Virus record (IMG/VR): IMGVR_UViG_3300042892_005961
Span: 62,001 to 126,000 of that record
Reading direction: 5' to 3' (one strand)
Length of the DNA stretch: 64,000 bases
In this document: positions 258 to 45,330 of the stretch, in pieces
How positions within the stretch are numbered: the stretch's first letter is position 1
How the letters are laid out: each line of letters starts with the position of its first letter
Position numbers and translations under genes: made by a program
Notes under the pieces: generated by a model
What the model was told of the DNA's origin: nothing
Databases searched by the model: none
What the model saw: the letters and a program-made list of their open reading frames with translations, nothing else

Positions 258-815
258 CTAAATAAGTGTTTTTGTTTTATTAATTCTATATTTGTTACCA
301 ATTGGAAATCCTATATTTTTAACTTCTTCTATATTAAGATAATTAACAATTTTTTTAAATCCATTATTATAATATAATTCTTCGTAAGAAATTGTAAAAA
401 AATCTTTATTAACATATTTTTCTTTAAATTCAGATTTTAATATCTTAAAATATTCTGTTTTTTCTTTGGTAATTGAATTTTCTGATGTTTTATAAACATA
501 TGGTAGATGCCAGTTATCCGTATTTACCGCATTTAAAAATGATTCCAATTGTTCTTGTGTATTTTCTCTATATAGTACAATAATTTTATCGGATACATTT
601 AACAATGAATTCCAATTTAAAGTAGGATAATATATTTCTTTAATACAAAGATGTTTAGTTTTATATTTATAATCTTTTGGGTCAATATTATTTTGAAACC
701 ATTTACTATTAGGATTTTCCGGTTCAAATAGTGTGGTAAAGTTTTTATTAAAATAAAACCAATTCGTAAGATTTGTTGAACCACTTCTCGGTTCTGCTAA
801 AATTGTGATAATCAT
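258..815 (-). CDS. Sulfotransferase-like protein
   Basis: N-terminal ILAEPRSGSTNL matches the 5'-phosphosulfate-binding loop (xxRSGST); LYRENTQEQLES and ISYEEL resemble later sulfotransferase motifs. Confidence 0.6.
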   Translation of the reverse strand: MIITILAEPRSGSTNLTNWFYFNKNFTTLFEPENPNSKWFQNNIDPKDYKYKTKHLCIKEIYYPTLNWNSLLNVSDKIIVLYRENTQEQLESFLNAVNTDNWHLPYVYKTSENSITKEKTEYFKILKSEFKEKYVNKDFFTISYEELYYNNGFKKIVNYLNIEEVKNIGFPIGNKYRINKTKTLI

Positions 816-833
816 ATTAATAATATTTTTATA

Positions 834-1421
834 TTAAAGTATTGTTTTTTTTTCCTTTAAAATCGGAAAATCAAATAATACATTTGCGGCAATTACAATT
901 CTATCGATAGTAGAATTAATTGAAGTATCAGGTCTATGATATACATCTGCAGGGAAAATAACAAGTTCATTTTCTTCTGGTAAAAACATCCTTTGTACAT
1001 TATCTTCTTTATCCATAAAAAATAATTTACCATCGTTCCCAGTTAAATTATTTGGCATTTGTACATAATAAGTGAATGTGCAATTGCTTTCTATTGATTT
1101 TTTTACATGTGGAGCAAACATTGTGTGGTTATGATAATGAGATTGTGTATCCTCATCCCTAGAAATAAAAATCCAAGAATATAAACAATAATCAACTTCT
1201 TCAACTTTTTTATCTTTTTTAAATAATTCTATACATCTCTTAACACCATAATTTAAAATAAAATCAATTTCTTTACATGTTAATACTATGTTAGTTTGAA
1301 TACCTGGTGTCAGATGTGATGGTTCATAATTAAATAATGATACGTTTTGATATATTTTTTTTATCAAAATTTCTTTTTCATATGGATATTTTATTTTTTC
1401 TCTATATATTTTATCAATCAT
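834..1421 (-). CDS. Putative 2OG-Fe(II) oxygenase
   Basis: HYHNH (HxH), TFTYYVQMP, DGKLFF, LVIFPADVYH and RIVIAAN give the DSBH oxygenase layout. Confidence 0.7.
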   Translation of the reverse strand: MIDKIYREKIKYPYEKEILIKKIYQNVSLFNYEPSHLTPGIQTNIVLTCKEIDFILNYGVKRCIELFKKDKKVEEVDYCLYSWIFISRDEDTQSHYHNHTMFAPHVKKSIESNCTFTYYVQMPNNLTGNDGKLFFMDKEDNVQRMFLPEENELVIFPADVYHRPDTSINSTIDRIVIAANVLFDFPILKEKKTIL

Positions 1422-2032
1422 AGTAAACTAATTATATTTTTTGTTTTAAGATTTGTTTCATAAATCCACCCACTTATAGAATATCTTTTATAATTTTTAT
1501 CAATAATTTCATCTACACAATGTAAATCTTTTATATTTTCAACATCAAAAATATTTAAACTATTAAATTTGGGTAATAATTTGTATGTAATATTATTTTT
1601 ATCATCTATGAAGTTTAAGCAACCACCTTTTTTTTCATCTGCATCTTTTGTTAAATTGTAAACAAAAGCATATTTTCTACCCAAAGATACATCGTTATGT
1701 GGAGATAAAAAATGGCCATATGTATATTTTGAGACAAATACACTCTGTGCTGTAAAAAACTTATCTTCTAACAATTTACTAATTTCTAATTCCAAATTTA
1801 ATAGAAAAAATAAGTTTTGTATAAATTCTTTGTTTTCAATACTACTATACCAATATGAAAATTCACCTTCTTTAAATTTTGATTTTTCATATTCATAAGA
1901 TTTTTTATGTTTTGAATTTGTAATCCAATCAGTTTGAGAATCGATTATATCATATACATTATTTGCAATACCATCAGATAAAAAATTTTCTATTTGTATT
2001 GGTTTTTTTTTTAATTCTTCAATATACCCCAT
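1418..2032 (-). CDS. Prolyl-4-hydroxylase-like 2OG-Fe(II) oxygenase
   Basis: KYTYGHFLSPHND (HxD), GGCLNF, distal His in LHCVDEI, and RYSISGW. Confidence 0.75.
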   Translation of the reverse strand: MGYIEELKKKPIQIENFLSDGIANNVYDIIDSQTDWITNSKHKKSYEYEKSKFKEGEFSYWYSSIENKEFIQNLFFLLNLELEISKLLEDKFFTAQSVFVSKYTYGHFLSPHNDVSLGRKYAFVYNLTKDADEKKGGCLNFIDDKNNITYKLLPKFNSLNIFDVENIKDLHCVDEIIDKNYKRYSISGWIYETNLKTKNIISLL

Positions 2033-2043
2033 AATACTTAATT

Positions 2044-2733
2044 TTATACTAAATTACCTTTTTTTACAAATCTTGATTCAAAAGTATCCCACAAAAAAGT
2101 TTTTAGTTCATTATTAACTTCTATTTTATTTTTTATTTTTTTAGTATCGTTCATTTTGGTAATTTCTAATTTTACTCCAAATTTATTGTTTATAAAATTA
2201 ATAAATTTATCAATTTCGGTTATATCAAATTCGTATGTACATTTTTCATTTTCTTTCCAATATTTTTGGGAATTAAAAATATATAAAGTACCAGGTAGAT
2301 TTTTATTTATTTTTATAAATAAACTATTATAATAGTTTTGCACTTCAGACTGGTTTTCAGAATATATAGCATTTGCAAAATTATTATTAAAATGTTTGTA
2401 TATAAATGCATTATCAACATCTTCCCAATTACAAATTAATTCATTATTATGTTGTATTGCAGAAGAATAGAAAAAAAATTCAAATGCACTTAATAATCTA
2501 TCTAACCAATTTCTTGTTATGCAAATAGTATCTTTATGACCAAAATAATCTATACAATCTTTTTTTCTACTATGAAAATGAGGGATAATTTTATTTTTAG
2601 ATTCTTCTATTAAATGTGTTCCACTTATAATTTTTTTTATATTTAAAGATGAATTATAAATTGAGTTTTCAATTGAAACCGATGCGCATCTTGGAATTGA
2701 TATCCAAATTAATTCATTGTTAATAAGAAACAT
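2044..2733 (-). CDS. Sulfotransferase family 2-like protein
   Basis: WISIPRCASVSIE resembles HIPKT(A/G)GTS; ITRNWLDRLLSAF resembles the RxPxxRxxSxY 3'-phosphate motif. Confidence 0.6.
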   Translation of the reverse strand: MFLINNELIWISIPRCASVSIENSIYNSSLNIKKIISGTHLIEESKNKIIPHFHSRKKDCIDYFGHKDTICITRNWLDRLLSAFEFFFYSSAIQHNNELICNWEDVDNAFIYKHFNNNFANAIYSENQSEVQNYYNSLFIKINKNLPGTLYIFNSQKYWKENEKCTYEFDITEIDKFINFINNKFGVKLEITKMNDTKKIKNKIEVNNELKTFLWDTFESRFVKKGNLV

Positions 2734-2744
2734 TTAAATTTAAT

Positions 2745-3008
2745 TTAGATTATATTTTTTTGTTTATTTTCTGAAAAATATTTAAAATCAACATCGTCCC
2801 ATTTTCCTTTAGGACATGCATTTTGTTTTTCAGAAAATATTTTTTTTGAAAGTGGGCAACCACAGGCCGAACAAATAGGTTTTTTAATTACATATTTTTT
2901 ATATTCACATGTACCACATATGTTAGCTCTATTTAATGCAAGTGTTTTTTGGCCTTCATTTGGATTAAAAGAAATAATCCACGCATTAATTATCTCCGCA
3001 ATTTTCAT
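2745..3008 (-). CDS. Small Cys-rich, probably metal-binding phage protein
   Basis: R..ICGTCE ... CSACGCPL ... CPKGKW pattern (CxxC, CxxCGC, CPxxKW). Confidence 0.7.
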   Translation of the reverse strand: MKIAEIINAWIISFNPNEGQKTLALNRANICGTCEYKKYVIKKPICSACGCPLSKKIFSEKQNACPKGKWDDVDFKYFSENKQKNII

Positions 3009-3025
3009 AACCTATTTAATAAAAT

Positions 3026-3103
3026 TTAAGAATTTGAAGTTACAATTAATGAACCTATTTGTGTCATTATTGTATTGATTGTAGTAATTTCTTGTGCTGT
3101 CAT
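3026..3103 (-). CDS. Unannotated 25-aa Thr/Ser-rich peptide MTAQEITTINTIMTQIGSLIVTSNS
   Basis: Hand-translated ATG(3103) to TAA(3026). It fills the gap between two co-oriented genes and has an A-rich upstream region like other starts here. Confidence 0.4.
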   Translation of the reverse strand: MTAQEITTINTIMTQIGSLIVTSNS

Positions 3104-3125
3104 ATTTTAAGTATTTTTAATTATA

Positions 3126-4634
3126 TTATAATGGTAAACAAACCAAACTTGGTGAAAAACAAGGGCCTCCACCATTGTAGGTACAATATTCATACATTTT
3201 GTCGCATCCACCAGCACCAATTCCAAATGTGTTACAAGGTTGACATTGGTAATTATGTTCAATTGCTACAAACATACCATCATTTGTTTTGGTTAGGAAT
3301 AAATGTTCATCTTGAACAGTTATTGTCCATCCGTCAAACCCATTAACACTATTCGTTATATTTGTAACGGTTTTTTCTACCACACTTACTGTTTCTAAAT
3401 CATCTGTCTGAACTAAAAGGATTTTATCACCAATTTGTAACATATCTAATGTAGTATCTTCCAAATTTAAAGCAGTCCATTTAACAATATCTCCTCTTTT
3501 TATTAGATATTGTGATATTGATGTATCTTCCCACGTTGTATTATCATCAAATGTAATAGTTGTCATTGGTGACAAAACATTTGATTTTTGTTTACCTAAA
3601 ACTACATTTGTTGAAAATGTTGAGTTTGATAAAAATTCAGTAAAATTAACACTATATCCTCTAAGTTCATCTGATTCTGTTAAATTTGGTTGATTTTCGT
3701 ATAACTTTATTGTTTTTACCACATCTCCAACTTGTAATTCTAATCCTGTCTTATATGACCCATCTGCCATCATAACCAAATCGTCATCCATTAATTTTGG
3801 TTTATTAATAGTTTGTGTACCTGAAATATATGATTTTCTGAAATTAGGATTTACTTCAAACGTTTCAGTATCGTAAGTGACATCTTCAAATAATTGAACA
3901 TTACCATGTTTAGTATATGCTCCAATTGCAATTGATTCTAATGTAGGTGGATATAATAGATTATATGAACGAACTACTGTTGCAGTATTATTTTCAATTT
4001 TTTCAGCGTTAAAATAATACTCCATTAAAAAATATTCATTAGATACATTTTGTAATACTACATCTAATTGTTCTTGAGTTGCAACTTTAAAAAATTTAGG
4101 ATATTCGTTTCTATCATATACTGGATATTTTGCTTTTAAAACAAAATTTGGGTGAACTCCATTGTCGTTAAATGTTGTAATGTTTGACACTAATTGGTTT
4201 GACTCATCCATATAAGCAAATTGACTACCAAATTCGGTAGATTGTATTAACTTTAAAAAGTTTACCTTATCTTTACAATAAGTTTCATCTACAATTGCGG
4301 TTACATCATATGCACTTCTTATGATTAAATGAGTTTCCGAATCCTCTACATATGGGATAGTAATATTATTTGCAACCTCACTAAATACATATTCTATGTT
4401 TAGTGTCACACATAATTCTTGTAATTTTTTCTCAAATTGTATTATTCCACCAATATATGTTACTTTTGTAAAATTATTAGAAGCTATAAAGTTGGTTAAT
4501 TCGTTTAAATCAAATGTGTTATCAATTTCTGTTTGAGTCATTCGATTCATACCTGCATTAGTATTTATTTCAATTGGTTTTAAATTACCTAATGAATTAT
4601 ATACTAAATCGGTCCCTAATAATACTGTTCTCAT
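3126..4634 (-). CDS. Circularly permuted ATP-grasp-like domain fused to a Hint domain and a Cys-rich C-terminal peptide
   Basis: N-terminal GTDL...PIEINTN (ATP-grasp D..ExN motif at the N-terminus), then FVLKAKYP and FLMEYY. Hint blocks: LVMMADGSYKTGLELQVGDVV, LQIGDKI, WTITVQDEHLF, IEHN. Then a 41-aa tail with 6 Cys. Confidence 0.6.
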   Translation of the reverse strand: MRTVLLGTDLVYNSLGNLKPIEINTNAGMNRMTQTEIDNTFDLNELTNFIASNNFTKVTYIGGIIQFEKKLQELCVTLNIEYVFSEVANNITIPYVEDSETHLIIRSAYDVTAIVDETYCKDKVNFLKLIQSTEFGSQFAYMDESNQLVSNITTFNDNGVHPNFVLKAKYPVYDRNEYPKFFKVATQEQLDVVLQNVSNEYFLMEYYFNAEKIENNTATVVRSYNLLYPPTLESIAIGAYTKHGNVQLFEDVTYDTETFEVNPNFRKSYISGTQTINKPKLMDDDLVMMADGSYKTGLELQVGDVVKTIKLYENQPNLTESDELRGYSVNFTEFLSNSTFSTNVVLGKQKSNVLSPMTTITFDDNTTWEDTSISQYLIKRGDIVKWTALNLEDTTLDMLQIGDKILLVQTDDLETVSVVEKTVTNITNSVNGFDGWTITVQDEHLFLTKTNDGMFVAIEHNYQCQPCNTFGIGAGGCDKMYEYCTYNGGGPCFSPSLVCLPL

Positions 4635-4652
4635 GTTTTTTTGTTATTTATA

Positions 4653-4662
4653 ATAAATACTT
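4653..4662 (-). promoter_or_regulatory. AAGTATTTAT motif (candidate late promoter)
   Basis: Exact copy of the 10-mer also found upstream of fibre genes at 45371, 52660 and 60187; 18 nt upstream of the ATG at 4634. Confidence 0.5.
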
Positions 4663-4876
4663 ATTTTTTATCTTTTAGTCCAAATTTTATCCATTTATAC
4701 CAAATTCTTTCATGAAGATAATATTGAATGGGTTTATATATCAGTTCTACCACCCCGAAAGCCGTACCAACCTTGATTGATCCACTTACCCACCATATTA
4801 TTAAAAACCCAATAAGAGTACTTACAATACGATATGAGATGGTTTTAGCAATATGTCGTTTACGTTCTACTATCAT
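4661..4876 (-). CDS. DUF2061-like small membrane protein
   Basis: RHIAKTISYRIVSTL ... YYLHERIW pattern with two hydrophobic segments; adjacent to APS kinase. Confidence 0.7.
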   Translation of the reverse strand: MIVERKRHIAKTISYRIVSTLIGFLIIWWVSGSIKVGTAFGVVELIYKPIQYYLHERIWYKWIKFGLKDKK

Positions 4877-5259
4877 TTGTCATTCATATCAGGATATTCT
4901 ATAATATCTCCGTTTGAGTCAATATACCCGTTTCTGATACTTGTACCACTAATTTTAGCAACTTCTTCAGGTGGTTCGTGGTAAATAACATCATACCCAA
5001 CTCCTCTACCATAATTAATACTCTCAATATCAGGAATAATGGATATGTTAATTCTATGTGAATTTTCCTTAAAAAACGGTTCGTCCGATAAATCCATCAT
5101 TACTTGTTGAGCCGTTTTAGGGTTATTCTCATCTGTCTCTACATTTCTAATAGCCACCCACACATTCTTCCCCTTTTCTAATTGTTGATTAAGTAACCAT
5201 TCGTGGCCCTTGTGCCAATTCTGCCAGCGTCCTACATACATTGCATATTTCTTACTCAT
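4873..5259 (-). CDS. HIGH-superfamily nucleotidyltransferase (cytidyltransferase-like); candidate minimal ATP sulfurylase
   Basis: GRWQNWHKGH (HxGH) and C-terminal ISGTSIR; overlaps the APS kinase stop codon by 4 nt. Confidence 0.7.
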   Translation of the reverse strand: MSKKYAMYVGRWQNWHKGHEWLLNQQLEKGKNVWVAIRNVETDENNPKTAQQVMMDLSDEPFFKENSHRINISIIPDIESINYGRGVGYDVIYHEPPEEVAKISGTSIRNGYIDSNGDIIEYPDMNDK

Positions 5260-5693
5260 AGTGTTAATTTTTTTAATATTTCATAATAAGAATCTACTTC
5301 GGTTTTATCCGTTGTATCCAAATCTATAAAGTTTTCGGTAGGTGGTTCGTAGTTCTCTACGTGAAACTGATTTCTACCTCTATCCTCTGTCGTGCGTACA
5401 TAAACCTCAATAACATCTTCTCTATTCTTAAAGTCCTCTCTTTGGTCTTTATATGGGGAAACTAAGGATACCAAGACCGTAAACCCCTTTTTATTCAAAA
5501 ATTGAGCGATGTCTTGTGCTCTTTCAATATTTTTTTTCCTTCCCACCTCAGAATAGTCCTTATTTTGGAAAATGTCCCTTAAATCGTCCCCATCTATAAT
5601 AATAGTATTCTCCTTACCAAAATGGGTTAGGAGGTTGTTTACTAACGTAGTTTTACCAGATGCGGGTTGTCCTGTGAACCAATATATTGACAT
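5256..5693 (-). CDS. cysC: Adenylylsulfate (APS) kinase
   Basis: WFTGQPASGKTT P-loop, DGDDLR, VSLVSPY, YEPP. Confidence 0.9.
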   Translation of the reverse strand: MSIYWFTGQPASGKTTLVNNLLTHFGKENTIIIDGDDLRDIFQNKDYSEVGRKKNIERAQDIAQFLNKKGFTVLVSLVSPYKDQREDFKNREDVIEVYVRTTEDRGRNQFHVENYEPPTENFIDLDTTDKTEVDSYYEILKKLTL

Positions 5694-5699
5694 AATACT

Positions 5700-5731
5700 A
5701 TAATATAATCAATTAAAGTGATTTTGAGAAA
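5700..5731 (-). promoter_or_regulatory. Candidate Bacteroidota-type sigma70 promoter TTTC-N20-TATATTAT
   Basis: Same spacing and boxes as at 14765, 35643, 63828 and 63845; the -7-like box ends 6 nt upstream of the cysC ATG. Confidence 0.45.
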
Positions 5732-6447
5732 TAATTCTCAATAAATTTTTCATTTAATGGATCATTTTTTATTCTTTCCATTATTTTATTCGCAATAAAT
5801 TTATTTCCTTCTTCATTTGCGTGTCCCTGTTCATCCCTATTGAACCTTTTTTCTTTAAAAAGATCAATTAAACCAGTAAATAATGTTCTAATATGTAAAC
5901 CAAAATCAACAAATCTACTTAAATCAATTTTTTTATATATCTCCAATTCCGTTATACTATAATCAAATTGCATATAATTGAAAAAATAATAAGGAATGTC
6001 ATGATTTATTAAAAATTGTTGTAAAGAATATATATAATGAATTGTATGCATACTGCCCATCGGTTCATACTTTAAATGGTATTCTGTGTTATCATATAAA
6101 GTTACATATACTGGTTTTTCATCCATTAAACAATGTTCTCGTCTATTTGGTCCCGACCATTGTATTATAACAAAATCAGGTTTTTTACCTGTACTCATTA
6201 ATTTACATATGGATTCCATTGATTGGTGAAATATCTTATCATTACCGACACCAGATATCGCATCATTAACTAAAAAGTCTTTATCTAATGCCTTTATTTC
6301 ACTTAAAGTCAAAGGTAAAATATATTGATTATGATAATAGTTAAATGATTTGGTAAATCCACTCATAAGTTGATTAGGCCAAACATAACTCTCTTTGAGT
6401 GTTGGGTGATCGTCACTATGTGAACAACCATTTGTATATATTAACAT
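5713..6447 (-). CDS. SGNH-hydrolase/acyltransferase-like protein
   Basis: TNGCSHS, NDAISGVGN, and C-terminal GHANEEG catalytic-His motif. Confidence 0.55.
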   Translation of the reverse strand: MLIYTNGCSHSDDHPTLKESYVWPNQLMSGFTKSFNYYHNQYILPLTLSEIKALDKDFLVNDAISGVGNDKIFHQSMESICKLMSTGKKPDFVIIQWSGPNRREHCLMDEKPVYVTLYDNTEYHLKYEPMGSMHTIHYIYSLQQFLINHDIPYYFFNYMQFDYSITELEIYKKIDLSRFVDFGLHIRTLFTGLIDLFKEKRFNRDEQGHANEEGNKFIANKIMERIKNDPLNEKFIENYFSKSL

Positions 6448-6450
6448 AGA

Positions 6451-6567
6451 TTAGTGGTTATAAATAAACGGATCTCTTTTACGTAATTCTTCTAATTTCT
6501 TTTTAAATTCCTTCTTTCTTTTCTTGTCAGCAAAGTATTTCTTCACCCAATTGATTAGTTTTTTCAT
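6451..6567 (-). CDS. Small basic peptide, 38 aa (MKKLINWVKKYFADKKRKKEFKKKLEELRKRDPFIYNH)
   Basis: Hand-translated, below the ORF track cutoff. Starts at a TAATG overlap with the upstream stop and fills the gap exactly. The LRKRDPFIY ending resembles a small conserved phage family (from memory). Confidence 0.65.
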   Translation of the reverse strand: MKKLINWVKKYFADKKRKKEFKKKLEELRKRDPFIYNH

Positions 6568-7259
6568 TATATTATATTTTTAAGTTTATCATTTAATAAG
6601 TATTCGTAAAACATTCTGTTCATTTTTTCACTCCAATGATCGTCGCCAAAAATACCACGTTCACCATTTGAATTAATATAATCATCTTGGAGGGTCTCCC
6701 AAAAATTTATATTTTTTTCCAAGATTTTCCTATCCTCAATGTTACTATTTTCATAGTTTAAATTGTCCCACGAAAAAACATACACATAAGATGGTGTGAT
6801 TTTAATTAAACTATCAATTATTTCAAGATAATTTGAATGTGAAGATTCAGTTGAATTAAAAATCTGACACATTTTTATTAATTCTTCATTTAAATAATCA
6901 AAACCATCTATGTTTTCATTACCTTTTGACTCCGCACCAATAAACTTATTTACAAATTTATAACCATTAACATCAAATTTGTACCAATTATCTTTTTTTA
7001 AAGGTAACCTTGTTCTGTGAAATGCCGGTAAACAAATTATTAAAATGTCATCTTGTTTTAAATTGGGGATTGATATTATCCATTTATCAATTATTGTTTG
7101 TACATCTCTACTTGGTTGTCCGTCCACAATAACGTTATAATTTAATACATTTTCTTCTATTAATCTCGTCCACGTATGTAATTTATTTATTGAAATTAAT
7201 TCATATAATTTGTCCGTTTTCATAACAAAACTATCTCCAATAATTAAAAATCTTTTCAT
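6567..7259 (-). CDS. SGNH-like protein
   Basis: IIGDSF at the N-terminus and GDDHWS near the C-terminus. Confidence 0.55.
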   Translation of the reverse strand: MKRFLIIGDSFVMKTDKLYELISINKLHTWTRLIEENVLNYNVIVDGQPSRDVQTIIDKWIISIPNLKQDDILIICLPAFHRTRLPLKKDNWYKFDVNGYKFVNKFIGAESKGNENIDGFDYLNEELIKMCQIFNSTESSHSNYLEIIDSLIKITPSYVYVFSWDNLNYENSNIEDRKILEKNINFWETLQDDYINSNGERGIFGDDHWSEKMNRMFYEYLLNDKLKNII

Positions 7260-7262
7260 ATT

Positions 7263-8930: not shown

Positions 8931-8933
8931 TAC

Positions 8934-13442: not shown

Positions 13443-13448
13443 ATTATA

Positions 13449-14723: not shown

Positions 14724-14764
14724 AAATTATTATGAAATATAAATAAAAAAAACCATAATAACAA

Positions 14765-14795
14765 TTTGTAATTCATTATTTTTTTTGTATATTTT
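14765..14795 (+). promoter_or_regulatory. Candidate Bacteroidota-type promoter TTTG-N19-TATATTTT for the + strand cassette
   Basis: Lies in the divergent gap 14724-14799; matches the TTTG(-33)/TAnnTTTG(-7) consensus with one mismatch and ends 4 nt before ATG 14800. Confidence 0.5.
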
Positions 14796-14799
14796 ATAT

Positions 14800-15771: not shown

Positions 15772-15772
15772 T

Positions 15773-18934: not shown

Positions 18935-20165
18935 AATTTTAAACACGGTATATGATTCTTGGGATGGTGATGACATGTTACCCAATTTATGTAATACCAC
19001 TAATAGTAATTCATTTAGAACAGTAAAAGGATTATTTAATTTCTATGAAGTTATTGATCAAGTAAGAAATTGTAAGATTGAAGACGTATACAATAACCCA
19101 AATGAGAAATATTTTTATTTTATTAATCCAGTTGGTAATTCCTTATATTTGTTTCACCAATTTAAAAAAATACCTTTACCTGAAAACGTTGTTGAATGTT
19201 TTATGAAATGTGAGAATTTTAACATAGTAATTATAAATGAACACGAGCCAGAAACTAAAGAATATATAAAATTTATTGATGACGATTGTTTAGATAAGGG
19301 TTATGACAGAAAACGGTTTTATATATTAAATAATAACTCTAGGTTAAGTCAACATAAGCAATCTTTAAATTCTGAACTTAATGTTTATTCAACGGGATTT
19401 TTATTAAAATTTATATCTAAACATTTATGTAAATATGACTCTAAATTTATACCGGAGAAAAACTCTGAATTTTTTATGTGTCATAATCGTAGTCCAAAAA
19501 TACATCGTTATGTTTTTATTTGTTTATTATTAAAAAATGGTTTAATTGACGATGTTGATTGGTCTATGGTCATGGGTTGGTATCGTAAAACGAATAGATA
19601 CGGTGGATTCTATGAAGATTTATTAACAAAATATGAGACGCATTTTGTTTATCAAGAACAAATTGCTTATTTGGAAAATGTTGAGGTTAAACGAAGTAAA
19701 TTTGAGGTAGACAAAGATTGGTTTACGTCTGAGGAAATTTCACCTTCTTTTGAGTGGAATCAGATATATGAATTAAAAACGTATGAAAGTTCATACGTTA
19801 ATATTGTTACAGAATCAAATTTCTTGTTTAATGAAATTCACATTACCGAAAAGACACTAAAACCATTTTATTTCTATCAATTTCCTATTTTCTTATCCTC
19901 AATGAACCACATTAAATACATTAAAGAAATGTATGGTTTTGATATGTTTGACGACATACTTGATCATTCTTATGATAATGAGCCTGATAATAAAAAAAGA
20001 TTATTTATGGTATATGATGAAGTAAAAAGACTTAGTAAAAATAAAGACAAACTTATTGAGTTTTATAAAAATAACGAATCGAGGTTTGAAAAAAATAAAC
20101 AAATTGTTATTAATATTTCTAAATTAAATAAAGACTTAGAATATTTTAATAACATAAACAAATAA
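18927..20165 (+). CDS. GT10-like glycosyltransferase paralog
   Basis: FMCHNRSPKIHR, YVNIVTES...HITEKTLKPF...FP, DHSYDNEP. Confidence 0.55.
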   Translation: MDKILNTVYDSWDGDDMLPNLCNTTNSNSFRTVKGLFNFYEVIDQVRNCKIEDVYNNPNEKYFYFINPVGNSLYLFHQFKKIPLPENVVECFMKCENFNIVIINEHEPETKEYIKFIDDDCLDKGYDRKRFYILNNNSRLSQHKQSLNSELNVYSTGFLLKFISKHLCKYDSKFIPEKNSEFFMCHNRSPKIHRYVFICLLLKNGLIDDVDWSMVMGWYRKTNRYGGFYEDLLTKYETHFVYQEQIAYLENVEVKRSKFEVDKDWFTSEEISPSFEWNQIYELKTYESSYVNIVTESNFLFNEIHITEKTLKPFYFYQFPIFLSSMNHIKYIKEMYGFDMFDDILDHSYDNEPDNKKRLFMVYDEVKRLSKNKDKLIEFYKNNESRFEKNKQIVINISKLNKDLEYFNNINK

Positions 20166-20171
20166 TATATT

Positions 20172-21815: not shown

Positions 21816-22792
21816 TGAATAAAAATTCCAAAATATTAATCACTGGTGGTTCGGGATTAGTAGGACAAAATTTAACCGAAAGATTACTTAGAGAAGGATA
21901 TACCAATTTAAGAGTAAACCTACATAAAAGAGGTGTTAGAACTACCCACGATGGTGTTGATTACACATACCATGATTTACAAACTTATGAAGGTTGTTTA
22001 ATGGCAACAAAAGAAGTGGATGTGGTATTTCATGCTGCTGCTTCAACATCTAATGCTGTGGACACTGTAGTTGATCCATTAGCTCATGTTACACCAAATG
22101 TTGCAATGAATAACTTCTTAATTGATTCTAGTTGGAGAAATAAGGTTCAACATTACATCTTCTTATCATCTAATACAGTTTATCCACCAAAAGGAGATGA
22201 ACCCGTTGTTGAGACTGATTTCTTATTTAATGAACCATATCCCGTTTACTTCCCTGTGGGTTGGATGAAGAGATATGCTGAGATTCAATGTGAATTGTAT
22301 GGAAAGTATTTACCTGTTAAAATGAAATGTACTGTCGTTAGACCAGCTAATTTGTTTGGTCCTCATGATAAGTATGATTTCAATAAGTGTCACGTTACTC
22401 CAGCAACCATTCGTAAAGTTGCTGACAGAATGAACCCAATTCCAGTGTGGGGTGATGGTAGTGAATTGAGAGATCTATTGTACATTGAAGATTTTGTTGA
22501 GGCATTACAAGTTATTATGGAAAATGAAACTGAAATGTTTGAAGTATATAATGTTGGTTCTAATAAAGTTTATTCAGTATTGGAAGTATTAGATATAATG
22601 AAAACAATTGCGGAACATGATGCACCAATAGAATTTATTAGTGGAAAACCTTCTATGATACCTACACGTAAAATTGATTCTAATAAAATTAAAGAAAAAT
22701 TAGGTTGGGAATCAAAAACATCTTTGTCGGTAGGTTTGAAGAAAGGTTACGATTGGTATAATGAACATAAAGAAGAATTTAATAAAATTTAA
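21812..22792 (+). CDS. GDP-L-fucose-synthase-like epimerase/reductase
   Basis: ITGGSGLVG, HAAA, GWMKR, RPANLFGPHD, WGDGSELRDLLY. Confidence 0.85.
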   Translation: MMNKNSKILITGGSGLVGQNLTERLLREGYTNLRVNLHKRGVRTTHDGVDYTYHDLQTYEGCLMATKEVDVVFHAAASTSNAVDTVVDPLAHVTPNVAMNNFLIDSSWRNKVQHYIFLSSNTVYPPKGDEPVVETDFLFNEPYPVYFPVGWMKRYAEIQCELYGKYLPVKMKCTVVRPANLFGPHDKYDFNKCHVTPATIRKVADRMNPIPVWGDGSELRDLLYIEDFVEALQVIMENETEMFEVYNVGSNKVYSVLEVLDIMKTIAEHDAPIEFISGKPSMIPTRKIDSNKIKEKLGWESKTSLSVGLKKGYDWYNEHKEEFNKI

Positions 22793-22800
22793 TAAATAAA

Positions 22801-23634
22801 ATGAAAGGATTACTATTTGGGGGTTGTTCATTTACATGGGGTCAGGGGTTATATTTCTATTCGGATTTACCTGGTTTAGTTTACCCCCCAAATGAAACAA
22901 CATATGAAAGACATCATTTAACTGACGCACATTTAAAATTTAAAGATACAATTCGTCATCCAAGATTGATTGCAAATCATTTTAATACATTTGAAGTTGT
23001 AAAAAATCTTAATGGTGGTTCTGAAGATGAAACGTTTGATTTTTTTAACATTATTTTTGACCGTAACACAAAAGGTCGAGAACATTTATCATATGAAAAA
23101 TATTCATATGAAGATATTGATTATATTATAATTCAATTAAGTCAAGTTTCGAGAAATAAATTTTGGTTTACTTTGAATGGTAAAAGACAATTCTGTGGTG
23201 CTTGGGTAGGTGGTGATAACAAGATAAATTTTGGATACAATATTGAAAATTTATTTATATGGATGGAACAAAATAATATGTCTGTTGATGAATGGTTTGA
23301 ATTACATAAAGATTTACAAGTAAAACGTTTAAAAAAAGAATTGATATTTTATGAAGAAAAGGGAATAAAACCAATTATATTTGCTTGGACGGACGAATTA
23401 CTTAGTAGAATTAAAAAAGATGATTATCTTTATAGTAAATTTATTAACATTGAATATAATGGGGAACCGTTTGAGACAATAGAAAATTTACAGAGGAGAC
23501 ATGGTAATATGGAAATCAAAAGTGACTTTAATAACTTCACAAATACCCCTCCGATGGATCACCACCCGTCAAAAGAGTGTCATCAAATATTTGCACAAAA
23601 CATAATAAAAAGAATAGAAAAAGATTTAATATGA
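22801..23634 (+). CDS. SGNH-like protein
   Basis: FGGCSFTWG, NLNGGS, DHHPSKEC. Confidence 0.55.
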   Translation: MKGLLFGGCSFTWGQGLYFYSDLPGLVYPPNETTYERHHLTDAHLKFKDTIRHPRLIANHFNTFEVVKNLNGGSEDETFDFFNIIFDRNTKGREHLSYEKYSYEDIDYIIIQLSQVSRNKFWFTLNGKRQFCGAWVGGDNKINFGYNIENLFIWMEQNNMSVDEWFELHKDLQVKRLKKELIFYEEKGIKPIIFAWTDELLSRIKKDDYLYSKFINIEYNGEPFETIENLQRRHGNMEIKSDFNNFTNTPPMDHHPSKECHQIFAQNIIKRIEKDLI

Positions 23635-24179
23635 GTTCACCACAATACACCCCGTACAAGGACGCACTAACTAATTCAATGACTTACCTTGGTCAACAGG
23701 AAGATACCGTTTTTATAGGTCAACAAGTCCTTTGGCACGGTAATCCTATGAGCACCACAATAGGTGAAGTTCCTAAAGATAAACTAATTGAACTTCCCGT
23801 TATGGAAGAATCTCAAATGGGTATGTCATTAGGAATGGCAATGGCGGGTAAGTTTGTTGTTACATTCTACCCTCGTTGGGATTTTGTGATATGTGCAACA
23901 AATCAATTGGTAAATCATGTTGATAAAATTGGGTTAATGAGTCAAGGTAAATGGAAACCTAATATGATTGTTCGTTTAGGTAAAGGTTCTGATAAACCAT
24001 TAGATCCGGGTCACCAACATAGAGGTAACTATTTTGAAGAATTTAAATCTATGTGTCCTAATACTAAATTTTGGGATTTAAAGAATTATTCAGAGATTGA
24101 ATCAATTTATAAAAACGCATATACTGAAGGTGGTATTCATGTTATAGTTGAATATCCTGAGTTATATTACGAATCATAA
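23631..24179 (+). CDS. TPP-dependent E1-beta/transketolase pyrimidine-binding subunit (short)
   Basis: VFIGQ, ELPVMEESQMGMSLGMA, NQLVNH, GHQH. Start at the ATGA overlap at 23631. Lacks the C-terminal transketolase domain. Confidence 0.8.
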   Translation: MSSPQYTPYKDALTNSMTYLGQQEDTVFIGQQVLWHGNPMSTTIGEVPKDKLIELPVMEESQMGMSLGMAMAGKFVVTFYPRWDFVICATNQLVNHVDKIGLMSQGKWKPNMIVRLGKGSDKPLDPGHQHRGNYFEEFKSMCPNTKFWDLKNYSEIESIYKNAYTEGGIHVIVEYPELYYES

Positions 24180-24204
24180 AAAAAGGGACTTAATGTCCCT
24201 TTTT
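24178..24204. terminator. Bidirectional intrinsic terminator
   Basis: AAAAAAA-GGGAC-TTAAT-GTCCC-TTTTT between convergent genes. Confidence 0.8.
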
Positions 24205-24206
24205 AT

Positions 24207-24638
24207 TTATCCTTCCATTTCTTCATCTTTCTTTGGCCAACTAACTTCCCAATCTTTAAAATCTGCAGCAATACAATCAATTTTATAATCTTTTCTACCA
24301 CCAACAACTTCTTGTATTTTATTCTTTGCAGTATTCCTAATACCATTTAATCCGTGTGTCAATGCCAACATACTTGGTCCTTCTTTTCCACTTCTTACAT
24401 TAGATTCATTATGCCAAATGTGTAAATTCATCTGTGCACATACAATAACAGCTCTTAACATTTCACCAGTAATTACAACATCTTTTTCACTTAATATAAG
24501 TTGTATATCATGTGTAATGTCTGCAATTTCTTGAGCATACTCTTCTTTGTGTTCGGTTATAAAAACCTCTTTTAATTGTACAATTGATAATCTATCAAGT
24601 AATTCCGATAATGTCGGTAAAAATCTTCTTTGTTTCAT
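24207..24638 (-). CDS. Helical hypothetical protein (DUF6165-like N-terminus)
   Basis: PTLSELLDRLSIVQLKE N-terminal helix; a family often found in glycan clusters (from memory). Confidence 0.5.
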   Translation of the reverse strand: MKQRRFLPTLSELLDRLSIVQLKEVFITEHKEEYAQEIADITHDIQLILSEKDVVITGEMLRAVIVCAQMNLHIWHNESNVRSGKEGPSMLALTHGLNGIRNTAKNKIQEVVGGRKDYKIDCIAADFKDWEVSWPKKDEEMEG

Positions 24639-25936
24639 TATATTAATGATTTATATTTTAGTTTATTTGTTTCTTCATTACAATATCTTTTCATTTCTAA
24701 ATACGCATCAGGAAATCTAAATAATTTCTCAATCAATGCATTATAATTATATTCAATCGTATCTTCCATTGATTTAAACCACCCAATTTTATCTTCTATA
24801 TTAACCACCTTTCTAATTGATTCAATTAGATATTGAAGTCTCTCATGTGTTGGTAATGTGTCATATCCTTCATCTATAAAACCATCAAAAGTCTTATATC
24901 CAATTTTTCTCATCATATTAAGACTATCTTTATTACCCATTATCATATATGGGTGTCTACAAGCTAATACTTTAAATGTTTTTTCACTTAAGAACATTGT
25001 TTGATCACTATCACCACAATGTGCTTCACTAATGACCGTAACAAATGTATCCAAACAAATATCATCATTAAAACGATTAATGTAGAAACTATCATCTAAC
25101 TCATTATTAGGTTTTTCATAAACTAATAAAGGTAGTCCTTTAGTAATTTCATTCAATAATTCTTCTTCCATATGTTTCCCTTCCCATTGATACCAATGTT
25201 TTGGAAAATCATTCATACTAACTAATCCGTCTTTTAATAAACCAGAATGATAAAGATAATTGTAGAACCAAACTCTCTGTGGTCTAATTCTTTTATTTAA
25301 ACACGCAAACGATTTTAATTTTTCAGGATGTGTAAGTTTATAATTAATATGATCTTGAAATGTTGGTAACGGATGTGCTTTCTCACCTTTAGATCGACCA
25401 TAACAAGTCATACCCATATCTAATTCAAAATGTGGGTATGGTATAACCTTTAATTTTTCAATTATATTATTATCTTCACACCATTTATCATAAACCACAT
25501 CTGCAATCATATTACCTGTTACATATATGATACGTTTTGGTGATACATCCCACTCTTGACATTGTTTATGAAAATAATCCCACAGCCATGATGTTTGATA
25601 ACCTTCTAAACTTTGATCTAACATTAAGAATGCTTTTTTATCTCTTAAATCTTTTAAGTATTTTTCATTAAGATGAAAAAAGAAACTTTTGACTCTTGGG
25701 TTATAACCTGTCCAATCATCGGGACTATGATTTACCGAAACTGGTATAATATATCCGTTTTTTTCGTCACTAGCGGGATAATATTGTAATTCACTATGTT
25801 TGTCATGTGCTTGAACGTATATCTGTGTTGCAGTTAATAATGCTGAAATACCAAACCTACCAATACCAGATGGATTAATATCATTACATGATGTAAAATT
25901 TGCTAACTTTTCTGTGTCCTCAAATAAGAAATCCAT
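24638..25936 (-). CDS. GT10-like glycosyltransferase paralog
   Basis: FACLNKRIRPQR, TVISEA...FLSEKTFKVL...HPY, DEGYD. Confidence 0.55.
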   Translation of the reverse strand: MDFLFEDTEKLANFTSCNDINPSGIGRFGISALLTATQIYVQAHDKHSELQYYPASDEKNGYIIPVSVNHSPDDWTGYNPRVKSFFFHLNEKYLKDLRDKKAFLMLDQSLEGYQTSWLWDYFHKQCQEWDVSPKRIIYVTGNMIADVVYDKWCEDNNIIEKLKVIPYPHFELDMGMTCYGRSKGEKAHPLPTFQDHINYKLTHPEKLKSFACLNKRIRPQRVWFYNYLYHSGLLKDGLVSMNDFPKHWYQWEGKHMEEELLNEITKGLPLLVYEKPNNELDDSFYINRFNDDICLDTFVTVISEAHCGDSDQTMFLSEKTFKVLACRHPYMIMGNKDSLNMMRKIGYKTFDGFIDEGYDTLPTHERLQYLIESIRKVVNIEDKIGWFKSMEDTIEYNYNALIEKLFRFPDAYLEMKRYCNEETNKLKYKSLI

Positions 25937-25938
25937 TA

Positions 25939-27393
25939 TTAAATTGGTTTATTATAATTTTCTTTATCTGAAACATATACACCTGGCTCAAAATGAGTTA
26001 TTCTACCATCAGTCATTGCCACATACGGAATTGTATTATCAATTACTAATGAATTGTACCAATCTTCCAATTCAGGGAACGTCTCAACAAAATTCTTATT
26101 TCTACGAATATCATATTGAACATAAAAACTTTTAAAATCATGATATTGCATTGACATATCCATTTCACTTGTATTATGACCTCTATTAACAACTTCGATA
26201 TAATCAATTAATCTTTGAATTTGTGCTCCTTCATTCATATTAATTAATGGATTCTTTTTATGTTTTCTCCACCACATTGATAACTTACCATGTAAATCAT
26301 GCTTGACGTCATCTGGTAATGTAAGTGGTGACATAAATGCTGGCCATCTTAATATGTTAAAATCTACAACTGGTTTATGTGTTCCGTATTTTTCTTTTAA
26401 TTTCAACATATCATCTAAAAATTCGGTAATGCTAAATAAACACAAACTATTAATTGTCATCATGATAACAACTTGTCTAATTTTAGCACTCTCAATTACT
26501 TTAACTAAATTACTTCTCCATAGTTCATAATTTAATCCATCTCTAATATATTCCGCTTGCTCACCATAAGCTTCACAACTTGTATACAAATCGAATTCTT
26601 TGATATCTAATTCGTGAGATATACTAATTAACCTATTCACAGTCGTTTCGTTAAGACCTAGGTTAGAATTGACTGCAAGTCGTAAATTAGGGGATGGGTA
26701 TTGTTTCATTATATCCATGAACTGCCAAAAATTACGTGACTGTGATGGTTCTCCACCAGTTATACGTATTTCCATTAATTTTTGAGACAATTCAGGCCAC
26801 CATTTTAAGAAAGCATCCACATATGGATTGTTTTCATTGTATTTACCATAAATCTCTGACCAAGAACCATCTGCGTAATATGCACCTGCACTTGTGGTTT
26901 TAAAATTTTGATATGGTCCGTTATCTCTAATATCTTTACCCCATGTTGTTGAGTATCCTGAATTACAATATGAACATGCAAAATTACATGTTCTATCAAA
27001 ACTAACCTCCATAGTTTGAGGTATAATGTCAGCATCCCAAGGTAATTCATTTAACGCCGCAATATCTTCAGGACTATATATTTGACTTTTATATACCCTA
27101 TCGGAAATATTATTTCTACCAATATCCTCAATCTTCCAACAGTAAGAACATTCCGCCGGTTTAACACCCTCTAACATCATTTTACGGATTTCCTTTTTGA
27201 AATCGGTATTATGTAATGCTGCAGGGTTGGTTTTAATTGCTTCAACATCTATTGGATGTGGTAATGGTAGGTGACATGAATTTGTAAACCCATGACCTAA
27301 ATGTAAACTTACGTTTAACCATTTAGCAGCACAAAAACTACAACTTACTTTATTTAAATGTTCATCTCTCCAATCACTTAAGTGTTCTGACAT
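25939..27393 (-). CDS. Radical SAM enzyme with an extra N-terminal Cys cluster
   Basis: CNFACSYC, ITGGEP, NSN; N-terminal CAAKW...SCH and CSYCW. Confidence 0.85.
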   Translation of the reverse strand: MSEHLSDWRDEHLNKVSCSFCAAKWLNVSLHLGHGFTNSCHLPLPHPIDVEAIKTNPAALHNTDFKKEIRKMMLEGVKPAECSYCWKIEDIGRNNISDRVYKSQIYSPEDIAALNELPWDADIIPQTMEVSFDRTCNFACSYCNSGYSTTWGKDIRDNGPYQNFKTTSAGAYYADGSWSEIYGKYNENNPYVDAFLKWWPELSQKLMEIRITGGEPSQSRNFWQFMDIMKQYPSPNLRLAVNSNLGLNETTVNRLISISHELDIKEFDLYTSCEAYGEQAEYIRDGLNYELWRSNLVKVIESAKIRQVVIMMTINSLCLFSITEFLDDMLKLKEKYGTHKPVVDFNILRWPAFMSPLTLPDDVKHDLHGKLSMWWRKHKKNPLINMNEGAQIQRLIDYIEVVNRGHNTSEMDMSMQYHDFKSFYVQYDIRRNKNFVETFPELEDWYNSLVIDNTIPYVAMTDGRITHFEPGVYVSDKENYNKPI

Positions 27394-27439
27394 ATTGGTG
27401 TTTTTTTTATAATATAAACTTTATTATTGACATATGAAA

Positions 27440-28177
27440 TTATATAATAAATTCTTTTGGTACCTTTTCTAAGAAATTACTATTTTTAGATTCATCGTAT
27501 ACTATACCTAAATTATTAACTGTTTTAAAATCATATAAACAGACGATATCATCATAAAATCTATTTTTTAAAATTACATCGGTTTCCTTTTCATATATAC
27601 TTTTAGAATCTTTAATGTTTGAAGTTTTACTTATTAATGAAAAATGATTCATTTCTATTTTAGTAAAACCTCCAAATGTGTTTGGATGTGGACTTGGACT
27701 GCAACAACCGATAAATAATCCAGGTCTTTTGTAGTCATCGACAAACTCATTGGTGAAATCAATATGATTGTCCTCAACAAAGTTTTTATAAACGGTTATT
27801 CTATTTTCATCTCTAATAATACTAACGGTCATTCCTTTTTCAATATCTTCTTTAGTTACTGATTTAAATACAACATTATTATAACAATCTTCAGATTCAG
27901 TGGTTGTCCAAAATTCAAAACATAACTCCCCTTGTGGTTTATTATAGCTTAATCCCATATTTTTACCTGATTTACCAAATATCATACGAACATCCTCACC
28001 CTCGTAGTTGTCTTCTATTTTAAAATTACATGTAATAATAAAATTTTCGTTGTAAAAAAAATCAGTTACTGATTGATTTTCAGATTTATTGAATTCGGTC
28101 ACATATTGATTTTCGTGGTGTGTAGATAAGTCCCATTGAAACTTTAACCAATACGGTTCTCTATAATTTATTGTCAT
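27440..28177 (-). CDS. Stand-alone LamG/ConA-like domain protein, homologous to the two N-terminal repeats of the next gene
   Basis: IFGKSGKNMGLSY, FEFWT, LFIGCCSP and EMNHFS align with repeats in 28161-30983. Confidence 0.55.
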   Translation of the reverse strand: MTINYREPYWLKFQWDLSTHHENQYVTEFNKSENQSVTDFFYNENFIITCNFKIEDNYEGEDVRMIFGKSGKNMGLSYNKPQGELCFEFWTTTESEDCYNNVVFKSVTKEDIEKGMTVSIIRDENRITVYKNFVEDNHIDFTNEFVDDYKRPGLFIGCCSPSPHPNTFGGFTKIEMNHFSLISKTSNIKDSKSIYEKETDVILKNRFYDDIVCLYDFKTVNNLGIVYDESKNSNFLEKVPKEFII

Positions 28178-45309: not shown

Positions 45310-45330
45310 ATATATGTGTTCTAAATCCTT

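Follow-up and report, generated by a model that had tools for sequence, protein, structure and literature searches.

Why should a dozen or more enzymes from at least eight unrelated folds, encoded in one gene island of an uncultured T4-like marine phage, end in nearly the same few residues? The window that we analysed is the whole stretch of 64,000 nucleotides covering positions 62,001 to 126,000 of IMG/VR record IMGVR_UViG_3300042892_005961. A sequence-only reading of it had listed 12 proteins with Lys-rich tails ending in two aliphatic residues, had noted looser NKI, KNI and KPI ends on several more and different ends on the fibre proteins, and had inferred a docking or sorting signal that recruits the enzymes to a common scaffold, factory or protease. 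The observation held and proved stronger than had been stated, whereas the interpretation is only partly supported: the shared ending behaves as a feature of the peptide, but no receptor, scaffold or compartment for it was found on the 211 kb record.

The ending and its place in the island

All 12 tails are present in the sequence, and the looser ends and the different fibre-protein ends were also described correctly. For the two genes on the plus strand, the position given had been that of the gene start and not of the tail. With Phi standing for L, I, V, F or M, 18 of 38 genes end in Phi-Phi-COOH in the island at genome 59.0-90.2 kb (window -2731..28177), compared to 15 of the other 196 genes (Fisher p = 2e-8). 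Codon shuffles predict 3.4 +/- 1.8 such genes in the island when the whole gene is shuffled and 3.7 +/- 1.8 when only the last 12 codons are, and none of 5000 shuffles reached 18, while the non-island genes show no excess (15 observed, 17-18 expected). Counting the narrower ending [LI][LIV]-COOH, 23 of 234 genes carry it genome-wide against 7.2 expected, and 17 of these lie in the island. The excess is confined to the last two residues, as in the island [LI][LIV] occurs 17 times at the terminus but only 0-3 times at each of the tail offsets 2-20. The island limits were chosen after seeing the data, but the run-length test does not depend on them: the longest run, 10 consecutive tagged genes, was reached in 0 of 100,000 label permutations. 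The genes come from our own greedy ORF caller, although C-termini depend only on stop codons.

Some points of the original description needed correction. The tagged run starts about 2.7 kb upstream of the window, and the sharper form of the motif is K(-4)-[KSNT](-3)-[LI](-2)-[ILF](-1). Furthermore, the claim that unrelated folds end alike is only partly true and overstates the independence of the 12 examples, since ten of the 18 island carriers are paralogs in two superfamilies, SGNH hydrolase and 2OG-Fe(II) oxygenase, and the number of independent acquisitions is smaller than the gene count. Nevertheless, at least eight folds carry the tag, including 2OG-Fe(II) oxygenases, SGNH hydrolases, sulfotransferase-like proteins, UDP-glucose dehydrogenase, radical-SAM/B12 enzymes, a SET-domain protein, a TPP-enzyme subunit and a zinc-ribbon protein. 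After merging the paralogs by eye, 7 of about 19 island superfamilies are mostly tagged, against 12 of 174 outside (p = 7e-4). About half of the glycan/protein-tailoring enzymes of the island are tagged, and the tag sits on enzymes and not on fibre or structural proteins.

Table. Features of the island discussed here, in window coordinates.
Position (strand)	Size	Protein	C-terminus	Observations
3..251 (-)	158 aa	2OG-Fe(II)-oxygenase-family paralog, 3' part (gene runs off the window start)	KIKNII	Fifth member of the 10-gene tagged run that starts at genome 59269
258..815 (-)	185 aa	Sulfotransferase-like	KTKTLI	In its family, 77 of 95 diverged representatives end Phi-Phi
834..1421 (-)	195 aa	2OG-Fe(II) oxygenase	EKKTIL	Orthologs end TLM or TLL
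1418..2032 (-)	204 aa	2OG-Fe(II) oxygenase	NIISLL	Tail of roughly 11 residues after the last strand, low pLDDT; homologs down to 50% identity keep [ST]-L/I-L/I; the two homologs at 26-30% identity end right after the GW strand
2044..2733 (-)	229 aa	Sulfotransferase-like	KKGNLV	NLI in relatives
2745..3008 (-)	87 aa	Zinc-ribbon-like	KQKNII	Only tagged family present in all four island lineages (16/17 tagged; ends II, LL, LI, LF, FL, LM)
3126..4634 (-)	502 aa	Protein with a Cys-rich C-terminus	CLPL	Untagged; only untagged family present in all four island lineages, always next to the zinc-ribbon gene
6567..7259 (-)	230 aa	SGNH-hydrolase-family paralog	KLKNII	
9643..11006 (-)		Two SGNH paralogs	KRRI, IKNI	Only one terminal aliphatic residue; an ortholog of the first ends NKII
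11006..12319 (-)		Unknown family (start uncertain)	FFESLI	A 52%-identical ortholog ends FKNLI with a synonymous ATA to ATT change
12267..13442 (-)	391 aa	UDP-glucose 6-dehydrogenase	DIKSLL (...IYYGGKKQDIKSLL)	Last 8-10 residues are a lineage-specific extension absent from 110 of 112 homologs at about 70% identity; tail is coil with low pLDDT
15773..16588 (+)	271 aa	SGNH/DUF6071-like	ENKKLI	Tail codons at 16574-16585
17127..17762 (+)	211 aa	TPP-enzyme (E1-like) subunit	KWVIF	Phi-Phi, but not among the 12 tails first listed
22801..23634 (+)	277 aa	SGNH-like	IEKDLI	DxHH block about 25 aa before the end; tail codons at 23620-23631
24638..25936 (-)	432 aa	Phage-only family	KYKSLI	
27440..28177 (-)	245 aa		PKEFII	Same domain occurs twice internally in the neighbouring 940-aa fusion protein, where local alignments stop short of this tail

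Base composition, gene overlap and the peptide ending

Lys, Ile and Leu codons are AT-rich and gene ends overlap the A-rich initiation region of the next gene, and it had been set out beforehand that an AT-bias null, or the same ends on cellular homologs, would undo the idea. The AT caveat does explain the Lys-richness and the ATA codon choice, but not Phi-Phi. In GC-matched bins, the island exceeds the other genes at GC below 0.24 (6/7 against 1/5), at 0.24-0.27 (6/8 against 2/22) and at 0.27-0.30 (4/8 against 1/39). The ending is likewise independent of the downstream start, being found in the island in 5/9 genes with an ATGA overlap, 2/3 with a TAATG overlap, 6/11 with 4-20 nt spacing and 4/9 with more than 20 nt, while among the other genes it is found in 0/16 with ATGA and 0/14 with TAATG overlaps. 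In the glycan island of the AT-rich pelagiphage HTVC008M, 6 of 79 genes end Phi-Phi, which is background level.

The comparison with diverged relatives points the same way. A 44% GC island keeps KRLI, NHLI, NKFV, KKFI and IRLI with CTC, TTC and TTG codons, and F and M variants occur (TTT TTT, CTA TTC, TTG ATG). In 20 tagged ortholog groups the last two codons change fast at positions 1 and 3 (0.37 and 0.52 differences per pair) but almost never at position 2 (0.00 and 0.07), i.e. hydrophobicity is kept while codon positions 1 and 3 turn over. Of 44 ortholog groups with at least two distinct end states, 18 are Phi-Phi in every state, 21 in none and 5 are mixed. In the sulfotransferase-like family, the 77 of 95 representatives ending Phi-Phi compare to 1-4 at any other tail offset, and in the least AT-type compositional quartile the ending is still found in 15 of 23.

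The tail is also appended after the catalytic domain in the two families that have outgroups, the 204-aa oxygenase and the UDP-glucose dehydrogenase. Homologs outside the lineage do not carry it, as 110 of 112 UDP-glucose dehydrogenase homologs lack it. AlphaFold confidence collapses over the tail in both, with pLDDT falling from 66 to 41 in the oxygenase and from 50 to 36 in the dehydrogenase.

It remains possible, though unlikely in our view, that the ending is a by-product without protein-level function, arising from nucleotide constraints at gene ends (an A/T-rich, Shine-Dalgarno-less initiation region of the next gene, ATGA/TAATG overlaps and a preference for ATA before the stop codon) together with inheritance among paralogs and cassette shuffling in a mosaic island. 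Indeed, Lys and AAA are enriched in tails genome-wide, regions upstream of start codons are about 85% A+T with no Shine-Dalgarno signal, and orthologs of one gene sit next to different downstream genes, with the junction right after the stop codon. ATA is strongly preferred over ATT as the last codon, also outside the island. In 31 of 39 tagged ortholog groups the last-codon Ile is ATA, against 38% usage elsewhere in those genes, so the gene end is not shaped by the peptide alone. Besides the results above, it speaks against this view that the candidate nucleotide words are common elsewhere and seldom span a stop codon (TTAATATAA in 4 of 24 occurrences, TATAAATA in 0 of 62) and that there is little information downstream of the stop codon.

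What the tail may do

We interpret the ending K-x-[LI]-[LIF]-COOH as a selected short linear motif, two aliphatic side chains plus the free carboxylate, usually with Lys two to three residues upstream, displayed on a flexible tail that was added to otherwise unrelated tailoring enzymes. The analysis establishes that the motif exists, that it is specific to position and to the island, that it is independent of composition and gene spacing, that it is conserved as a residue class and that it is appended and flexible. That it is read by one common partner gripping free hydrophobic C-termini is an inference, which we consider somewhat more likely than not. More weakly, we infer that the partner could be a Clp-type AAA+ unfoldase of the host acting with ClpP, in which case the tail would be a MuA-type (ClpX C-motif-2-like) degron giving this enzyme set a shared, timed turnover. 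This is our preferred but tentative explanation, and binding, degradation and ClpX dependence are inferred from sequence alone. The phage brings its own active-looking ClpP, which scores 187 bits and has the Ser/His/Asp motifs, and nonpolar C-termini are reported to destabilise bacterial cytoplasmic proteins (Parsell, Silber and Sauer 1990). On the other hand, a search for AAA_2/ClpX-type genes found none on the record, and ClpP was not found on four related contigs, although these are fragments 8-52% complete. Moreover, conservation in 81% of a deeply diverged family fits a signal needed for the enzymes to work, by sorting or docking, at least as well as a signal for their removal.

The docking or sorting tag is a possible alternative and, in our estimate, only slightly less likely. 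Here, the tail would recruit the enzymes to a common scaffold, a substrate-bearing assembly or the inner face of the membrane, forming a multi-enzyme factory. All the peptide-level evidence applies equally. The carriers are enzymes of one pathway island, in which most glycosyltransferases, methyltransferases and nucleotide-sugar enzymes lack the full tag, and in the sulfotransferase-like family the linker before the fixed end varies in length. Lys-rich plus hydrophobic tails are a common way to bind membranes, but eight to ten residues ending in a charged carboxylate make a weak anchor. The untagged 502-aa protein might be a hub or substrate, but a complex prediction with a tagged oxygenase gave no answer, and a neighbouring 911-aa protein suspected of being capsid-like is a GT4/FkbM fusion. 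In its boldest form, which is possible but less likely than not, K-x-Phi-Phi-COOH would be a phage-specific sorting code, with a phage or host receptor binding the free tetrapeptide and gathering a dozen or more hydroxylases, esterases, sulfotransferases, radical-SAM and SET enzymes to modify a glycan or a virion or fibre protein. Such a system would be widespread in uncultured T4-like marine phages and would be the first C-terminal targeting system of the KDEL/PTS1 type described for a bacterial virus.

A structural role, with the two terminal aliphatic residues folding back onto the protein's own core or onto a neighbouring subunit as a cap, lid or oligomer clasp that evolved separately in each family, is doubtful, for although SGNH hydrolases end in an amphipathic helix after the DxxH block with tails that look homologous, and the sulfotransferase-like family keeps the ending at a nearly fixed distance (about 7-10 residues) from a conserved KYR motif, it would require the same solution on at least eight unrelated folds in one island only, the tails of the two modelled proteins are not packed, and the dehydrogenase fold works without the tail in 110 of 112 homologs.

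Comparison with other C-terminal signals

The MuA transposase degron CILEQNRRKKAI (ending RRKKAI-COOH) belongs to the C-motif-2 class of ClpX signals, a basic run followed by an aliphatic C-terminus (PMC12723719). Like the tails described here, it sits at the extreme C-terminus, needs an exposed tail and is used by a phage-type element. However, MuA ends A-I after Arg/Lys and is one protein, whereas the motif described here is shared by at least eight enzyme families and ends in two bulky residues (L/I/F), with Lys as the basic residue. Among 63 tagged ortholog groups, Lys is at -4 in 25 and at -3 in 17.

The logic of the C-terminal sorting peptides of eukaryotic organelles (KDEL/HDEL, PTS1 -SKL) is the same, in that unrelated enzymes working together carry the same 3-4-residue signal at the free C-terminus after a variable linker, and homologs working elsewhere lack it. 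This is an analogy only, as the sequence differs and bacteria and phages have no known receptor or compartment for such a signal, nor bacteria a known C-terminal tetrapeptide sorting system.

PDZ ligands and substrates of tail-specific proteases (Tsp/Prc, CtpA) share the hydrophobic residue at the free C-terminus, which for the tagged groups holds by definition. At the class-defining position two residues before the last one, Ser or Thr is found in 21 of the 63 groups and K, N, D or E in the others. Profiles PF13180, PF17820 and PF03572 gave no match in the phage record while the control genomes matched, so no PDZ or S41 partner is encoded there, and bacterial PDZ proteases are periplasmic whereas these enzymes use cytoplasmic cofactors. 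In encapsulin cargo-loading and microcompartment encapsulation peptides, operon-encoded enzymes of different folds also share a short C-terminal peptide, but the motif and its length differ from both, the encapsulin (PF04454) and BMC shell (PF00936) profiles gave no match in the record, and the island neighbours are glycosyltransferases. Compared to the Gln/Leu/aromatic consensus of sliding-clamp-binding motifs (T4 gp45, beta clamp), the tails lack the Gln and mostly lack aromatic residues; a Pfam search for the gp45 family found nothing, but it also matched none of the control genomes and is uninformative.

If the ending proves to be only a gene-end by-product, it is a warning that strongly position-specific, lineage-conserved C-terminal patterns can arise without protein function. 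If instead the tail is a real handle, a portable four-residue tag that either docks or destabilises proteins in marine bacteria would be a useful tool. It would mark a functionally linked set of phage enzymes, most of them of unknown role, and give a simple way to find their common partner by peptide pull-down, which could expose how large marine phages organise or time a whole glycan/protein-modification pathway inside the cell.

The island and its C-terminal ending

The window (bases 62001-126000) belongs to a 211,168-bp IMG/VR virus record with 31% GC, which represents a tailed phage with a Gp23-like fragment, collagen-like tail fibres and baseplate-like proteins. Searches of GenBank phages returned no DNA or protein match for three island proteins and no close relative of the record, and only the carbamoyltransferase found homologs, in cyanophages and pelagiphages, at about 30% identity. 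A greedy longest-ORF caller of our own gave 234 genes and 97% coding, and although the gene calls and start sites are therefore home-made, C-termini depend only on stop codons and are robust to that choice. The enzymes in question lie in a low-GC island (21-35% GC) encoding 2OG-Fe(II) oxygenases, SGNH/GDSL-like hydrolases, sulfotransferase-like proteins, an APS kinase, a carbamoyltransferase, a UDP-glucose dehydrogenase, several sugar epimerases, a dTDP-sugar isomerase, split TPP enzymes and radical-SAM proteins, flanked on the left by GT9 and GT4/FkbM glycosyltransferases. Pfam, NCBIfam and PDB-sequence searches left about half of the tagged proteins unnamed.

The sequence-only reading had listed 12 enzymes with a shared ending, and this observation holds: all 12 tails are correct, although for the two + strand genes the position it gave is the gene start and not the tail. 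Genome-wide, [LI][LIV]-COOH occurs in 23 of 234 genes, against 7.2 expected from the internal dipeptide frequency, and 17 of these lie in the island, including 10 consecutive genes in a run that starts 2.7 kb to the left of the window. When the two last residues are each allowed to be L, I, V, F or M (Phi-Phi), 18 of 38 island genes carry the ending compared with 15 of 196 in the rest of the genome (p = 2e-8), with the caveat that the island limits were set after seeing the data. Codon shuffles predict 3.4 +/- 1.8 island genes (whole gene) or 3.7 +/- 1.8 (last 12 codons), and none of 5000 shuffles reached 18, whereas the other genes are at expectation (15 against 17-18). A run of 10 tagged genes was never reached in 100,000 permutations. 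The signal is confined to the terminus, as in the island [LI][LIV] occurs 17 times at the end and 0-3 times at each of offsets 2-20.

Positions of the island, the tagged run and other features discussed in the text
Feature	Genome position	Window position	Strand	Other locus
Low-GC island with the excess of tagged genes	59.0-90.2 kb			
Ten consecutive tagged genes	59269-65008			
Gene ending KMLL after a stop-codon change	60533-61162	-1467..-838	-	
Sulfotransferase-like gene of the 95-member sample		258-815		
Three-gene cassette, first copy		2044-4634		
Three-gene cassette, second copy	26138-28793			
First convergent gene		23577-24179	+	
Hairpin between the convergent genes		24176-24210		
Second convergent gene		24207-24638	-	
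Radical-SAM gene		25939-27393		
245-aa protein gene and 940-aa fusion gene		27440-30983		
940-aa protein gene		28161-30983		
Fibre-like protein genes (1055-1980 aa)		41818-58671		
Related fibre genes	148-160 kb			
80-aa ORF with a Gp23 match	43407-43649		+	L021:7407-7646
ClpP homolog gene (outside the window)	136275-136802		-	L019:1489-2166

Composition, gene spacing and nucleotide words

The same reading had cautioned that Lys, Ile and Leu codons are AT-rich and overlap the A-rich initiation region of the next gene, and had set the comparison with a codon-shuffled null, split by the presence of a downstream start, as a test of its idea. Regions upstream of start codons are indeed about 85% A+T, with no Shine-Dalgarno signal seen genome-wide (G at most 0.13 at any position from -20 to -1), and after start-site refinement 25 gene pairs overlap as ATGA and 17 as TAATG. 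Lys/AAA and ATA are enriched as last codons genome-wide, and the last-codon Ile is ATA in 31 of 39 tagged ortholog groups, against 38% ATA usage inside those genes (p = 1e-7), with a milder ATA excess outside the island. The initiation region or overlap of the next gene is thus the likely cause of the Lys-rich flavour of the tails and of the codon choice. One island gene ends KMLL (TTA TTA TGA) where the five relatives end ML or IL (TTA TAA TG), a single A-to-T change in the stop codon having added one Leu and moved the stop onto the ATGA overlap of the next gene.

These constraints do not, however, account for Phi-Phi. In the island the tag occurs in every class of distance to the next start (ATGA overlap 5/9, TAATG 2/3, 4-20 nt 6/11, more than 20 nt 4/9), while outside the island 0 of 16 ATGA genes and 0 of 14 TAATG genes have it. 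In GC-matched bins, island against rest is 6/7 vs 1/5, 6/8 vs 2/22 and 4/8 vs 1/39, which together with the shuffles and the offset profile rejects an AT-bias null. Nucleotide information is concentrated at the second codon positions of the last two codons and fades right after the stop codon, and the candidate promoter or junction words spanning the stop codon (TATAAATA, TATAAT, TTAATATRA) are not specific, being common elsewhere and seldom spanning a stop. Furthermore, the glycan island of the AT-rich pelagiphage HTVC008M is at background level, with 6 of 79 genes ending Phi-Phi. Also in the window, two convergent genes are separated by a G+C-rich hairpin flanked by A and T runs (AAAAAGGGACTTAATGTCCCTTTTT), which looks like a two-way terminator.

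Conservation in relatives and independence of the carriers

Versions of the island are held by eight close IMG/VR loci, three more distant ones and several ENA/Logan contigs, which are not phylogenetically independent. Each shows a run of tagged genes flanked by untagged ones: the relative L010 has 11 in a row (NSLI, NSLI, KNII, KSII, KTII, KSII, KTFF, KTLF, TPIL, PDLI, KTLI) and the relative L016 has 12 of 13. Among 44 ortholog groups with at least two different nucleotide states of the end, a small sample, 18 are Phi-Phi in every state, 21 in none and 5 are mixed, and some tails diverge completely yet still end alike (SKNIQNLI / NDIKTYLI / GKTESKLI, and ENKQKNII / KSESNRLL). In tagged groups the last two codons differ often at positions 1+3 (0.37 and 0.52 per pair) but hardly at position 2 (0.00 and 0.07), indicating that the hydrophobic class is kept and not a nucleotide word. 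Across 63 tagged ortholog groups, position -4 is K in 25 and N in 10, position -3 is K in 17, S in 14, N in 8 and T in 7, position -2 is I in 28 and L in 27, and position -1 is I in 39, L in 15, F in 6 and V in 3.

A distant island, L025, adds a SET-domain protein (KPLI) and a radical-SAM protein (TRLI) to the carriers. An ENA contig with 44% GC, L026, still has KRLI, NHLI, NKFV, KKFI and IRLI, written with CTC, TTC and TTG codons, and carries the same kind of island (radical-SAM, carbamoyltransferase, APS kinase, sulfotransferase-like, DUF6171-like and a protein of about 500 aa), so that the gene set spans a wide compositional range of uncultured phages.

The tail is appended and flexible. 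The UDP-glucose dehydrogenase ends ...IYYGGKKQDIKSLL, and of the 112 homologs outside the eight closest ones 110 end otherwise, typically ...YYGGK(K) at 378-384 aa; only the phage's own lineage (84-92% identity) has the extension of about 9 residues. The 204-aa oxygenase keeps K-x-K-x-x-[ST]-L/I-L/I down to 50% identity, whereas the two homologs at 26-30% identity end right after the last strand. AlphaFold gives pLDDT 91 for the oxygenase, falling to 66 and then 41 over the last 14 residues, and predicts the dehydrogenase tail as coil at 50 falling to 36. In the family of one sulfotransferase-like gene of the island, 77 of 95 full-length representatives (each below 50% identity to the others) end Phi-Phi, against 1-4 at any other tail offset and still 15 of 23 in the least AT-type compositional quartile, and the linker after a conserved KYR motif varies in sequence and length. 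The 940-aa protein holds two internal copies of the domain of the adjacent 245-aa protein, plus a radical-SAM part like that of a nearby gene, and the local alignments of the internal copies stop short of the C-terminal tail.

The carriers are less independent than the sequence-only reading had assumed when it described unrelated folds. BLAST, Pfam and motif inspection place five island carriers in the SGNH superfamily and five in the 2OG-Fe(II) superfamily. After these were merged, partly by eye, 7 of about 19 island superfamilies are mostly tagged (9 have at least one tagged member), against 12 of 174 outside (p = 7e-4 and 2e-5), so pure paralogy reduces the count but not the effect. Counting relatives, at least eight folds carry the tag. 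Duplication is also seen for a three-gene cassette, present in two copies at 25-46% identity, which consists of a sulfotransferase-like gene, a zinc-ribbon gene of about 87 aa (called 'L37E' by JGI) and a gene of about 500 aa with a Cys-rich C-terminus; in the second copy the first two proteins both end KTLF. Among the giant fibre-like proteins, blocks of 41-91% identity are shared with each other and with genes about 40 kb away, suggesting domain shuffling among fibre genes.

Candidate partners and possible functions

Our analysis shows that the ending is a selected, end-anchored, exposed peptide feature shared across folds within one pathway island, while it is an inference that one partner reads it and, more tentatively, what that partner does. 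The proposal of the sequence-only reading, a docking or sorting signal that recruits the enzymes to a common scaffold, factory or protease, is supported only in part. In the search for a reader we found a ClpP homolog of 225 aa (187 bits) with the Ser, His and Asp motifs in place (GMAASMG, MLHQSSGG and a later Asp) and an N-terminal extension of about 45 aa, which looks active from its sequence and sits among small unknown genes about 46 kb from the island. Profile searches for PDZ, PDZ_6, S41, encapsulin, BMC and AAA_2 (ClpX-type) genes were all negative in the record, which is only about 63% complete and comes from a phage of unknown host, and no ClpP was found in four related contigs, which are fragments. 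Pfam searches for gp45 and portal proteins matched nothing, but nothing matched in the control genomes either.

We tentatively favour a Clp-type degron, which would give the enzyme set a common turnover. The ClpX C-motif-2 signal of MuA (…RRKKAI) has a broadly similar layout, a basic run followed by an aliphatic C-terminus (PMC12723719), although the tails here end [LI][LIF] and not A-I. A docking or sorting tag is nearly as likely, though equally tentative, and is favoured by the very high conservation. In this respect, the only untagged family present in all four island lineages is the roughly 500-aa Cys-rich family next to the tagged zinc-ribbon gene, a family with no Pfam, NCBIfam or PDB-sequence match; a complex prediction of its 502-aa member with a tagged oxygenase gave a score of 0.01, which is not evidence either way. 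An encapsulin-like shell was considered because BLAST linked the 911-aa island neighbour to two proteins near a Gp23 Pfam hit, but all three turned out to be glycosyltransferases, and the hit is a separate 80-aa ORF that matches only positions 135-194 of the T4 Gp23 major-capsid profile and sits inside a cluster of glycosyltransferase and methyltransferase genes. A by-product of gene-end constraints is unlikely but remains possible, and a structural role within each protein is the least likely of the readings that remain.

The nearest described systems are ClpX C-motif-2 degrons, ligands of PDZ domains and tail-specific proteases, encapsulin and microcompartment targeting peptides and, by logic only, the KDEL and PTS1 signals. 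The tag could be assigned to none of them, since the partner genes are absent from the record or beyond what sequence can test, and the sequences differ. C-terminal short linear tags are known as a kind, but literature searches found no description of such a tag on phage enzymes. What the data support is a C-terminal short linear tag that is real and widespread in an uncultured phage clade, its function being at present a matter of inference.
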